From Oculina patagonica (lineage: Eukaryota), in contig NC_135760.1 in the NCBI RefSeq assembly GCF_052425735.1, positions 8,866,001 through 8,930,000 of the forward strand: a stretch of 64,000 bases of DNA, read 5' to 3'. The translations under genes were made by a program, and so were the position numbers. Every line of letters begins with the position of its first letter. Positions within the stretch are counted from its first letter, which is position 1. The notes under the pieces were generated by a model, which did no database searches, was not told the DNA's origin, and saw only the letters and a list, made by a program, of their open reading frames with translations. Positions 42,320 to 57,820 of this stretch are shown here, in pieces.

Positions 42320-45300
42320 ATGAGTAACCGTGCGGTCTTCCGTCTCTTTCTGGCTGTTGGGATTATTTTTGGAGCTGTGCGTGCTTGCAATGACAGGTAA
42401 GAGGATGTTTTCCACTTGCTTTAGCTGGATGATGAGCCTAAGTTCTTTATCTGGGTAAACAAACTGAGCACGAAAATGATCTTGTTTTTAACTTTGCCTA
42501 GCAAGTTGATCAAATTTTTGCAAACATGCTACCCATGCAGCTAGGCTAGCTGTCTAAATGCCGACTTTTTCTTTCCCTCTAGATGCAGAAATTGCCTGGA
42601 AGATTTAAAGACTGAACGCTCCAGGTAAATAAAAATACTCGTCAGTTAATCCTAGCAACAAAATCTTTACATAGCAAAATATAAAATCGCAAGGAAGCTG
42701 AGGTTCTTTCCTCTGTTGGTTTTTCTCCTTCACGAGCTTCGCAGGGGACTTGCGGAGGAGATTTGTTGCCCGAATGCTCAACTGTGAGTCACCGCAAGAA
42801 ATCTCACAACGATTGGCCAATCCTACACAATTTCAGCTCTTTAATTTCCAAGACTAGAGTGATAATACGTGGCTATATAATTTTTCAATGCACTGACGAG
42901 CAGAGAGGTCAAGAAAATTATTTAGGAAGTGAAATAAAAGTGTGGCAATCAGCATGTGGATGTGATTGAGATTGAAATGGGTTGAATAGATCTCAAGCTG
43001 AAACTCCGAAGAAAGACCTTTGCGTGGTAAACGTTGTATTAATTTCCGAAAAGAGTTATTAATTCCTCTTTCTCCCAAGAGTTTATTGTTACAGAGCTAC
43101 GTGTGTCATTTTCCATACCTTGGTGAACAATAATTTTTTAATTAAATTTGGCTAATTTGGCCCTTGGCAATTTAAAGTTTTCACAGAGAAGTAATTAGAT
43201 CTAACGAAGATATATGTGATTTTATAGTTACTAGAATACACGGTGGAAGTTTAAAACTGATTGGCAGCTGTAGTAACCAAAAAACTTACTTTTTATGTTT
43301 CCTTCGGTCAACATGCCTAGGATAAATATAATTGTTAATTTTAACTCTCAAAAGAGACTTCTATTACTATTATTGGGAGGCCGATTGCCTAATTGTTAGT
43401 GAGCTGGACTTCACGACGAACGGTCCGGTTTCGAGTCCTGGCCAGGGTCGCTGGACAGAACCGGCGTTACTTTCACAGTGTCTCTCCCACTAAGGATTAT
43501 TACTGGGTACCGGGCGAATTAAATGCTGTGGGAAGCCCTGCGATAGCCTAGTATTCCATTAAGACTTACTATCACAATCACTCTACTTTAGGCTGAAGGA
43601 AGACTGGGAGAATACGCGTCTAGATCTTAAGGGAAAGGAAGCCAACAACCAGTTGACCGAAGAAGTAAGTCTCTCTTTTCCCATTGGCCATTGTCCGTTT
43701 ATTGATTGACTGGTGATGGTTGGCTGGATAAAAGGATGGATGGATATCCTGCCGAGATGTTAAAATTCGACAAATAATTGTAATATAATAGCACGTAATT
43801 CTTCATGCAGCTAAACATGCTACGAATATCGTGCCCCATAATTGCTTCCTTCGTTTGATTTTTTTTAGCATCTTACAACAACGGTCAACGGAGTCATCAT
43901 ACGGTAAGTGAAATTTTACGCCATTTGGAACTACAGCTCCAAGAAAATATACCCCTCATCTTTTTTCATGGTGTGTTTACGAAACGCGCCTTCGCGGCTT
44001 ACAAAATTCAAGTACAGTAATTCTAACGAATACCTCATGTAAAAGGACACAATGCATCCGTTAAGGCGCACTAATTATGGTCCCAGCCTCATACAAACAC
44101 TACATTCTTGACTTCTCATAAGTGAGCACCTCCCCCGGCTAACCCAACCCTTTTTCTGGTCACAAAGTTAACGGGCAGTTCGGCTTTAGTCTTAAGCGAA
44201 TGTTTTGAAAATGTCACGTTTTACTTTCTTTATTTTTTACTAGTTATGAAATAAGAAGTGTGAGCATTCCTCAGTTAAGATGTAAACGATTCTTCTACCG
44301 ATATCTGCAAAAACAAAGTTAAGCAATAATTAACTTAAGCGAGTAGTCTTAAGTTCAAGGGAACATCTGTTATATTAAGGGGATCCCATGAGACAGGAAG
44401 TATCTCCTGCTTTTATTGACTCAGAATGCAGCATAAGTTTCAGGAACCATGAAATGCATTATTTTAAATTACAAGTACTCCTTCTTTGGACTGTTTTTGT
44501 TTTTAGTTGCTAAAGCTGTTAGAAGTTAAGAACGTGATGTGAAAAATTTTTTTGATCAGACCTTGTTAATCACTCAGCTTTTATCTACCTGTTCTTTTTG
44601 TCAGTTAATTCAAACCTTTTTAATTCATTCGACAGCATCACTGACTTGAAAACGAAGATTGAGGCCTTCTGCAACAAATGCCCACATGACAAATGTTCAG
44701 ACATATTAAGTCAAATGGAAAGAGGGTAAGCGCTATTCCAGCAGAACGGCAGACTCGAGACAGATGTCTGGTGTTGGCACAAATGACATAACTCATAGTC
44801 TCATTTTCTTTCGGTATTGTGTTCTTGGGCAGAACACAACTTTTAGTGACCGTATCTGGGCCCAGCACAAGCGGTGTGATTGTTTGTATATTCCAAATAT
44901 GAAGAAATGTATGAGTATATGAAAAGGGTCTTATTGTCGTAAAAATATTGCGAGTAATGTCTTCATTTGTAAGGTGTAGTAACAGTCAAGGCAAACCCAT
45001 TCGAATCGCTCAAATTCGCCATTTTAATCCGCAGAGAAGACGAAATCAACAAATGAGGTAATTATATTTACGTTTGTTTTGACCTAAAATGTAGACATTA
45101 CTTGCAATATTTTTACGACAATTCTGAAGTCCCTTTAGATATTCGGTTTACTAACTGTGCTAACTATACAACCGATTTGCACTTGTGCACAGGTTTTTAT
45201 TAGCTTCTCACTCACTCACTGACCGGCATTGCTTGCTTTTAGAAGTATTTTAAACTAATTGTAGCGATTTTTATCCTATTTTATCCTTATTTGATTATGT

Positions 45301-45488
45301 CTTAGTATTTTAATTTAAATTGTTTAGTTTAATAATTTAGTGGTTTTGCTGCTATTTCAGTAGACACGTTCAAGAATAAAGGTTTCTTTCTTTCTTAGTC
45401 TTCAAATACCCTTCACCTTGATCATTTTATCTGTCAAATAGAGTATTGAATAACCACAGTTTCATTGACTGATTGATTGATTGATTGG

Positions 45489-45538
<50 letters not shown>

Positions 45539-56907: not shown

Positions 56908-56950
<43 letters not shown>

Positions 56951-57820
56951 AAAGTTCCATTCATAACAACTAAAAAAAGATCTGTTTGCTCTGACAAACA
57001 AGTAATTTACCCAAAACATCATTTATGATAAGCGTTTAAACCGTATCTATCCAAATAACTATATGTAACGTAAAAACAAAACGTTTAAATATCCTTAATC
57101 ATTAACAAAGGAGCCCCTCCCAGGGGGGTTCCTAGCCTGCATACCTGGCGGGATGCGAGTGCATTGTTTATGGCGAACGGGAGAGACGGAACCGCTTCGC
57201 CGCTCACGCACGCGGGCTTAGCTTCGCCCGCGATTTTCCTCTCCCCGCGCTAATCCCGCCAGCTACGCAGACTATGGGGTTCCATGTTCACTTGTTCCCT
57301 AAAATTATTTTGTCCATGATTTTTTTGTGATCCATGTTGTTTCCTTAAATCTCAGAAACACAGCTTTTGATTCTGCGTTAATTCCTTCCTTTATTTTCCT
57401 TTTGTTACCTTGTTCCCAATTATTTAATGGCCATGTTCCTTTGTTCCCTGAATCCCCTGGGAGGGGCTCACTAAAGCCTGGTTTTCACTAGCGACGCAAG
57501 CACAAGCGCAAGCACAATTGTGATCACGCAAAAAGGACAAATTTTGATCCCTGTGCTTGTGGTTGCTGCAAGCACAAGCACAAGCATCCAAATGCAATGC
57601 GCTTGTGCTTTTGCTTGAGTCGAAGTCGTTTTCACGGAGAAATAAGAGCTGTTATCCTTGCGCTTGTGCTTGTGTCGCTAGTGAAAACCAGGCTTAAGAT
57701 ACAGAAATATTGACCAGTATATATTTCTTTCTTTTCTTGCACGTTCAGGGGTTGACGGTGGATGGCATCATCCCGATGCCGTTGTCGGCTCCTGGATCGT
57801 ACGACGGGGTCTTCGGTTGA
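51221..57820 (+). CDS. Uncharacterised secreted helical disulfide protein, paralogue C (148 aa)
   Basis: Exons 51221-51300, 51669-51710, 53639-53711, 54051-54085, 54620-54715, 55247-55295, 57749-57820. Translation: MSNRAVFGLFLAVGIIFGAVRTSSHA-RCKTRREELQAERSRVNEESERKRLDLKEKEANNQLTDEYLITTVNEIIASVTDLKMKFEIFCNDCPRALDNCPDIISRMNKRINRLQEKLEEHQKTDGGLTVDGIIPMPLSAPGSYDGVFG*. UTR exon from about 58515; AATAAA at about 58597. Confidence 0.86.
51418..51570. repeat. (CTA/CTG/CCA)n trinucleotide low-complexity tract
   Basis: Seen directly, in intron 1 of C. Confidence 0.9.
52641..52950 (+). mobile_element. tRNA-derived SINE
   Basis: A-box tggccaagtgg, B-box ggttcaagacc, body atagccaactggtctgcctcctgccagttgggatttttaacc, T-rich tail. 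Confidence 0.8.
52990..53276 (+). mobile_element. tRNA-derived SINE, apparently young, with target duplication ataagagg
   Basis: tggccgagtggttagagcg...gggttcaagtccc head; same body as the adjacent copy; ataagagg at 52982 and 53277. Confidence 0.85.
57111..57694. mobile_element. Nested cluster: GAG...CTC element (57111-57469) carrying a TAG-terminated element (about 57133-57274), with a Harbinger MITE (57475-57694) inside its target duplication
   Basis: gagcccctcccagggg ... cccctgggaggggctc; inner tagcctgc...gcagacta flanked by ggggttcc repeats; taa|agcctggttttcactagcgac ... gtcgctagtgaaaaccaggct|taa. All three are absent from the homologous intron of B (about 46945-46960). Confidence 0.75.

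Follow-up and report, generated by a model that had tools for sequence, protein, structure and literature searches.

A predicted secreted protein family of the coral Oculina patagonica with a conserved 5' tract and a mature region diverging at about the neutral rate

Three tandem genes and their products

We analyzed a 64,000-nucleotide stretch of DNA from the stony coral Oculina patagonica (assembly GCF_052425735.1, contig NC_135760.1, positions 8,866,001 to 8,930,000 of the forward strand), hereafter termed the window, which is AT-rich (GC ~37%) and contains three tandem genes that we call A, B and C. All three are annotated as coding for uncharacterised proteins, and their products share a framework of four invariant cysteines. 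Comparing the window with itself reveals two adjacent homologous units at ~41636-50407 (containing B) and ~50519-58792 (containing C), with a third, more distant copy (A) that begins near 31640. B and C are adjacent tandem duplicates, and an earlier note on this DNA had read the pair as an example of diversifying selection in which a conserved signal exon is joined to fast-changing mature exons. Our analysis indicates that the two copies do combine a nearly invariant 5' end with a rapidly changing mature region, and that the amino-acid changes in the latter have accumulated at roughly the neutral rate. The coordinates of the three genes are as follows:

Gene B, 42320..47080, + strand: LOC144646367, XP_078362049, P0001; 144 aa, stop TGA
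Gene B coding exons (7), + strand: 42320-42396, 42583-42624, 43592-43664, 43869-43903, 44636-44725, 45553-45601, 47012-47080
Gene C, 51221..57820, + strand: LOC144646366, XP_078362048, P0003; 148 aa, stop TGA
Gene C coding exons (7), + strand: 51221-51300, 51669-51710, 53639-53711, 54051-54085, 54620-54715, 55247-55295, 57749-57820
Paralogue A, 31758..39518, + strand: ACROYT_G009203, XP_078361314 / KAL9980596, P0002; 164 aa
Paralogue A coding exons (8), + strand: 31758-31834, 32235-32276, 33527-33599, 33797-33831, 37004-37076, 37182-37225, 38076-38160, 39453-39518

For each of these genes the spliced translation matches the database protein exactly, and the exon numbering of the earlier note, with seven coding exons each in B and C, is correct. 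All introns in A, B and C are of the GT...AG type, with GTAAG or GTAAA donors in B and C, and exon 2 is 42 nt long and phase-neutral. Paralogue A, which lies directly upstream of B and C and exhibits 43-45% identity to them, is the older copy and served as the outgroup.

The 3' ends of B and C are described differently by the two sets of annotations. Specifically, the GenBank submitter models exit exon 7 at a GTACG that is conserved in B and C and continue into a homologous terminal exon located ~3 kb further downstream in B and ~0.7 kb in C, in a region where the block 50089-50407 is homologous to 58498-58792. The duplicated units thus extend ~3 kb (B) and ~1 kb (C) beyond the RefSeq stop codons, giving a unit length of ~8.3-8.8 kb, and the rival RefSeq and GenBank annotations leave the C-terminus of both proteins uncertain. 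The alternative exons of B are:

Alternative cassette exon of B, 46116..46163, + strand: RefSeq isoform X2 (P0005); causes a frameshift in exon 7; block kept in C around 55794
Alternative terminal exon of B, 50106..50153, + strand: GenBank model KAL9980597 (P0004); C counterpart 58513-58560 (P0006)

The products have a mass of ~13-15 kDa and are predicted to be secreted, with a putative signal peptide contained in exon 1 that is followed by a hydrophilic, mildly acidic mature part of 119-139 aa (grand average of hydropathy (GRAVY) ~-0.7, isoelectric point (pI) 5.3-5.8, net charge -2 to -3) with 4-5 cysteines and no obvious propeptide. AlphaFold2 places three long helices at the same positions in B (pLDDT 75.5, pTM 0.67) and C (71.9, 0.66). 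The invariant cysteines, which are spaced C-x60-C-x2-C-x4-6-C, are located where helix 1 begins, where helix 2 ends (C-x2-C) and where helix 3 begins, and by helix topology they would meet at one pole of an antiparallel up-down-up three-helix bundle that disulfides may staple. Such a protein may act by surface-mediated binding. In regards to other motifs, A (32244-32255) and C (51678-51689) contain a furin-like K-x-R-R just 3' of the first conserved cysteine, while B has lost this motif and has gained two extra cysteines, C23 (42386-42388) and C30 (42593-42595).

Searches of protein libraries, Pfam, Foldseek and PDB recovered no homologue with a known function. An exhaustive profile search with the three signal exons against 1.84 billion representative proteins returned just two proteins or clusters (B and A), and word-indexed searches of 5.8 billion proteins returned only A, B and C of O. 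patagonica. There were also no relatives in two metagenome scans, and exact-protein look-ups pointed to no other assemblies. The best Pfam matches were coiled-coil noise below the curated cut-offs, a PDB sequence profile gave nothing significant (best E = 0.16), and Foldseek against PDB recovered only generic helical bundles (best E = 0.3). Judged by these searches, the gene family appears so far to be confined to Oculina patagonica.

Divergence between B and C and the conserved 5' tract

Comparison of B and C involves five features in addition to their coding exons:

Conserved 5' tract of B, 42270..42382, + strand: ~50 nt of 5' untranslated region (5'UTR) plus codons 1-21 (n- and h-regions of the predicted signal peptide)
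Conserved 5' tract of C, 51171..51283, + strand: counterpart of B 42270-42382
Codons 22-26 of B, 42383..42396, + strand: C counterpart 51284-51300; 5/14 nt differences and a 3-nt indel
Upstream (promoter) block of B, 41636..42319, + strand: homologous to C 50519-51220; 72% by blastn including gaps
Proximal 3'UTR of B, 47081..47177, + strand: homologous to C 57821-57919; better conserved than the coding exons

The codon counts that the earlier note had made by hand are reproduced by our alignment. Specifically, the first 21 codons differ at a single nucleotide (1/63 nt, CGT/GGT, leading to R8G), exon 2 has seven non-synonymous and two synonymous codon changes among its 13 full codons, exon 4 differs at 5 of its 11 residues, and 9 of the 16 codons in exon 6 are changed, all with an effect on the amino acid. 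Beyond codon 21 the coding sequences differ at 83/366 nt, so codons 1-21 are significantly more conserved than the remaining coding sequence (Fisher P = 9e-6) as well as non-coding DNA (490/2480 nt, P = 3e-5). The older comparison of A with B shows the same contrast, with 9/63 differences in the signal part versus ~43% in the mature region. Overall the mature region exhibits far more amino-acid change than is seen in an ordinary gene. The proposed contrast between a conserved signal exon and fast mature exons is thus real, but its boundary is not that of exon 1. The conserved stretch ends at codon 21, and codons 22-26, which are still in exon 1, constitute the most diverged coding stretch between B and C. 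By the -3/-1 rule these five codons probably represent the cleavage region of the signal peptide.

The statement that the introns and about 700 bp of promoter still align is also borne out, in that the upstream region and large parts of the introns can be aligned at a proportion of differing sites (p) of ~0.2. The block 41636-42501 aligns to 50519-51413, and between positions -720 and -70 the 570 aligned nt give p = 0.21, which is equal to that of the introns. Each intron is 16%-64% alignable in strict high-scoring segment pairs (p = 0.17-0.26), and the aligned non-coding DNA as a whole has p = 0.198, corresponding to a K80 distance of ~0.22-0.25 in strict alignments. A TATAA-like motif ~95 nt 5' of the ATG is common to the upstream blocks of A and B. 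At the other end of the gene, 10/92 positions differ in the proximal 3'UTR, significantly fewer than the 83/366 of the mature coding sequence (Fisher P = 0.013).

Several observations concern the introns themselves. The first 15 nt of intron 1 (42397-42411, 51301-51315 and 31835-31849) are nearly identical in all three paralogues, as are the sequences that border the 42-nt exon 2 (polypyrimidine/AG and GTAAAT), and these flanking segments are better conserved than the adjoining exons. An (ATTG)19 microsatellite (45464-45538) is present only in intron 5 of B, and a (TACTAC)n array of ~150 nt (51418-51570) only in intron 1 of C. Both repeats, together with larger insertions, explain much of the length difference between the introns of B and C.

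The 5' tract as a whole differs at 4/112 positions between B and C, as compared to ~22% in both flanks, with 3/49 differences in the 5'UTR and 1/63 in the codons. Within codons 1-21 there are no synonymous differences between B and C on 16.3 sites (P = 0.012 given the proportion of synonymous differences, pS, in the mature region). Between A and B there are 0.7 synonymous differences on 16.5 sites where ~9 are expected (P = 3e-5), alongside 8-9 replacement differences. Since synonymous sites and the 5'UTR are conserved as well, purifying selection on the signal at the peptide level does not predict this pattern, which instead points to either short-tract gene conversion or a constraint at the DNA/RNA level. 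Low synonymous change in the signal region has likewise been reported for conopeptides. A conserved RNA structure in the tract was considered and rejected, as no stable or covarying structure was found among the three paralogues, the weakly folding consensus reaches -14.3 kcal/mol and the z-scores are positive (+0.6 to +1.5).

Recurrent short-tract gene conversion, as opposed to selection on the signal peptide, would produce the near-identity of the B and C 5' ends as well as their lesser likeness to A, and we view this as a plausible explanation that nonetheless has clearly less than an even chance of being right. It is favored by the 5'UTR being as little diverged as the codons, by synonymous sites being as conserved as replacement sites, with differences proportional to the number of sites as conversion would leave them, and by the failure of RNA structure to account for a constraint. 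However, the tract limits are identical in the A-B, A-C and B-C comparisons, with the 3' edge at codon 21 in all three, as a constraint on DNA or RNA would have it, and divergence in the tract relative to the flanks is alike in the young and the old pair (ratio ~0.15-0.2). A steady constraint of the strength seen in the old pair would also suffice, as by our own arithmetic it predicts ~2.4 differences in 63 nt where 1 is seen and ~5 in 112 nt where 4 are seen. Moreover, ~112 nt is short for a conversion tract. Nucleotide-level protection of the 5' tract is the most useful open point of this analysis, and its frozen synonymous sites provide a compact case for separating gene conversion from nucleotide-level constraint. 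The same question also arises for the signal sequences of conotoxins.

Selection on the mature region

Selection on the mature region was evaluated from codon 22 to the end of B and C, a comparison of 122 aligned codons from two young sequences that has low power. The NG86 method gives a synonymous divergence (dS) of 0.286, a non-synonymous divergence (dN) of 0.266 and a dN/dS ratio (omega) of 0.93. Pairwise maximum likelihood under a codon model gives an omega of 1.17 with a profile-likelihood 95% interval of ~0.64-2.3, and omega = 1 is not rejected for this region (likelihood-ratio test P = 0.62). The dN value is close to the non-coding K80 distance, indicating that amino-acid changes accumulate at approximately the neutral rate and not demonstrably above it. 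Thus, the conserved 5' end and the fast mature region that the earlier note described are retained, while the dN/dS above one that diversifying selection would require is unsupported.

The earlier note had also proposed comparing dN/dS in individual exons with the divergence of introns. In this analysis exon 3 alone has an omega of 0.06-0.35, while exons 6 and 7 together have an omega of 2.5-3.7 (P = 0.065 uncorrected; 4.1-4.4 with P = 0.03-0.04 in an earlier alignment without exon 2, since redone). However, dN is nearly uniform across exon groups (0.24-0.30) whereas dS is scattered (0.12-0.49), and exons 6 and 7 combine a dS of 0.12 with a dN of 0.30, versus dN values of 0.24-0.27 in the other groups. 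The high ratio in these two exons is therefore driven by low dS and not by high dN. With one shared synonymous rate, exons 1-3 have an omega of 1.04 and exons 4-7 one of 1.24, and the heterogeneity is lost (P = 0.53), indicating that the per-exon differences are not robust and are a product of dS scatter among tiny exons. Note that hand-counted replacements in such exons can resemble positive selection even when dN/dS is ~1.

We also partitioned sites according to the residue found in A (hydrophobic or cysteine versus other), a division that is independent of the differences between B and C. This gave an omega of 0.81 for hydrophobic and cysteine positions and 1.33 for the others, neither of which is significant (others versus 1, P = 0.38). 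In a three-branch model with A as the outgroup, omega on the B and C branches is 1.07, a value for which equality with 1 is not rejected (P = 0.83), whereas the A/stem branch has an omega of 0.42 (P = 0.043 for the difference). Pairwise omega is 0.52 for A-B and 0.43 for A-C, both significantly below 1 with dS near saturation. In young duplicates dN/dS is generally raised soon after duplication as a consequence of relaxed constraint. Such relaxation predicts the rise on the B and C branches, although a mixture of constrained and positively selected sites would predict it too. The A, B and C genes resemble young relaxed duplicates in that omega goes from ~0.4 on the older branch to ~1.1 symmetrically on both post-duplication branches. 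They are unlike such duplicates in that the duplication is not very young (K ~0.22-0.25), both frames are intact and a sharply bounded 5' tract is protected.

An omega near one could alternatively signify loss of function, with one or both copies being redundant and drifting to pseudogenes. This would agree with the omega of the B and C branches, which is not separable from 1 and is above that of the A branch, and with a coding sequence that diverges as fast as the introns. However, both copies remain intact. All four exon indels between B and C are in frame, as compared to 27% multiples of three among 66 events in 2480 nt of non-coding DNA (P = 0.0055), and by our own arithmetic the non-coding rate predicts ~7 frame-shifting indels in 366 nt where none are seen. 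There are also no stop codons, whereas the chance of an open frame after 83 random substitutions is 0.06-0.07. Furthermore, B and C have kept all 24 of their splice dinucleotides as well as both start codons, the four cysteines are retained across A, B and C, and 29/35 hydrophobic positions stay hydrophobic between B and C. The replacements are slightly more conservative than those from random mutation (P = 0.06), and polarised nucleotide changes are symmetric, with 29 derived in B and 27 in C. Both genes are also annotated in RefSeq, B with isoforms. Decay of one copy is unlikely, and we consider a drift to pseudogenes very improbable.

In the explanation given by the earlier note, the mature exons are under diversifying selection through conflict or recognition (as toxins, antimicrobials, or in allorecognition or gamete recognition) while the signal is under purifying selection. 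This would account for a mean omega of ~1.1 despite constrained cysteines, core and frame, which implies faster-than-neutral change somewhere, and for the elevated ratio in exons 6 and 7. It is also in line with the 3'UTR and 5'UTR being better conserved than the coding sequence, and with a family that is tandem, putatively secreted and lineage-restricted with the layout of myticalins, beta-defensins, frog antimicrobial peptides and conotoxins (PMC5577615). However, none of the tests is significant, including that of the whole mature region, the heterogeneity among exons disappears under a shared synonymous rate, and the replacements are no more radical than random. In addition, synonymous sites of the signal region are frozen, which peptide-level purifying selection fails to explain, and acidic helical bundles of ~13-15 kDa resemble neither cationic antimicrobial peptides nor small cysteine-knot toxins. 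We therefore regard diversifying selection as unlikely, albeit a serious contender. Three alternatives that the earlier note had itself named as fatal to it, namely a dN/dS not above 1, relaxed selection and gene conversion of exon 1, cannot be rejected. A toxin, antimicrobial or conflict role also finds no support in an acidic, helical protein with a mature part of ~120 aa and without homologues, and nothing in the predicted products marks them as toxins or antimicrobial peptides.

The reading that we prefer, and to which we give about an even chance, is that after duplication the scaffold has remained constrained while the surface has been largely free to change, with both copies functional and the 5' tract held at the nucleotide level. 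Tandem duplication would have given rise to B and C, which would have since diverged to a non-coding K of ~0.22-0.25 while in both copies the reading frame, the splice sites, the cysteines and most positions of the hydrophobic core were preserved. The remaining, mostly surface, residues would have been replaced at approximately the neutral rate and equally fast in B and C, and the 5'UTR plus codons 1-21 would have been kept near constant by either DNA/RNA-level constraint or recurrent short-tract gene conversion. Several points weigh against this reading. With two young sequences and 122 codons, an omega of up to ~2.3 is still within the interval, exons 6 and 7 have the high ratio described above, and the AlphaFold2 models rest on an alignment of only three sequences. 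Furthermore, if the scaffold is constrained and yet mean omega is ~1.1, then some sites should exceed 1, which favors the view of the earlier note. This hint that some surface sites are above 1 is an argument and not a result, and positive selection on some sites is possible.

Neighboring features, known systems and biological meaning

Additional features were observed elsewhere in the window. A tRNA-Ser(TGA)-like sequence (52991-53062, + strand; ARAGORN, Rfam tRNA 33.8 bits) is located in intron 2 of C within a local duplication that is absent from B, where 52647-52833 is ~85% identical to 52994-53177. A tRNA-like T-arm motif is common to B (43418-43450) and C (53384-53415), and this motif and the tRNA-like sequence suggest tRNA-derived short interspersed nuclear elements. 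Two inverted copies of a ~410-nt element (30897-31315 and 62891-63295, 85% identical) lie on either side of the entire A-B-C cluster. Both copies have tandem repeats of 17-18 nt at each end, and they may be transposon copies or a coincidence. Between A and B a 119-nt AT-rich unit is tandemly duplicated with 99% identity (40168-40407). Finally, an open reading frame (ORF) at 22197-22679 (+ strand) has a signal-peptide-like start (MVSKQLFVLLLAAVLMMQYSMTSG) and matches neither Pfam nor the A/B/C family. It could represent exon 1 of a further gene for a secreted protein. A Pfam search with ten long ORFs from other parts of the window was negative.

A layout with a conserved signal and a variable mature region has been described in mussel myticalins, murine beta-defensins, frog antimicrobial peptides and conotoxins (PMC5577615, its refs 31-34). 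Like these families, the A/B/C family is a taxonomically restricted tandem multigene family that keeps its cysteine framework and has a highly conserved signal region and a highly diverged mature region (1/63 versus 83/366, P = 9e-6). Unlike conotoxin- and defensin-type families, the mature product is long (119-139 aa), is predicted to form a helical bundle, has no obvious propeptide and is acidic instead of cationic, and the conservation includes the 5'UTR and ends inside the signal peptide. The omega above 1 that is a hallmark of those families is also not observed here (0.93/1.17, P = 0.62; branch value 1.07, P = 0.83), in a two-sequence comparison of low power.

Among cnidarians, the SCRiPs are restricted to reef-building corals, and their mature peptides, 41-48 aa in length, carry eight cysteines in the motif Cx6-7Cx4-6CPx3-6Cx4-6Cx5-6CCC (PMC2652719). 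They are secreted, mostly acidic and multi-copy, and had neither homologues elsewhere nor a known function when first described (PMC2652719). The A/B/C family is likewise coral-restricted, acidic and multi-copy with a predicted signal peptide and no homologues elsewhere. It is unlike the SCRiPs in having four cysteines (C-x60-C-x2-C-x4-6-C), a predicted helical fold, ~120 aa and no sequence similarity, and thus does not fit their definition. Species-specific antimicrobial peptide families are also described for Hydra (PMC10945409). They share with the A/B/C family a cnidarian, lineage-restricted, secreted and multi-copy character, but the A/B/C products lack a cationic character, having a net charge of -2 to -3 and a pI of 5.3-5.8, and no homology was found. 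The same net charge of -2 to -3 sets the A/B/C products apart from cationic amphipathic antimicrobial peptides in general, which carry a net positive charge.

The evolutionary pattern at this locus is of a known kind, while the protein family itself is new and uncharacterised. As it stands, B and C constitute a well-documented example of a common pattern. A more far-reaching interpretation, which we consider improbable, is that these are coral-lineage-specific, disulfide-stapled three-helix-bundle secreted proteins with surfaces that are truly diversifying (for example in shaping microbes, in allorecognition or in gamete recognition in a broadcast spawner), and that a dedicated mechanism acting on the nucleotide sequence, and not selection on the peptide, would preserve their 5' cassette together with its synonymous sites. 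Should the surface prove to be positively selected, then the family would represent a new class of effector or recognition proteins in corals, one with a distinct structure. Because O. patagonica has been studied extensively as a host in work on Vibrio coral pathogens (e.g., PMC7374056), such a class would be testable in this coral.

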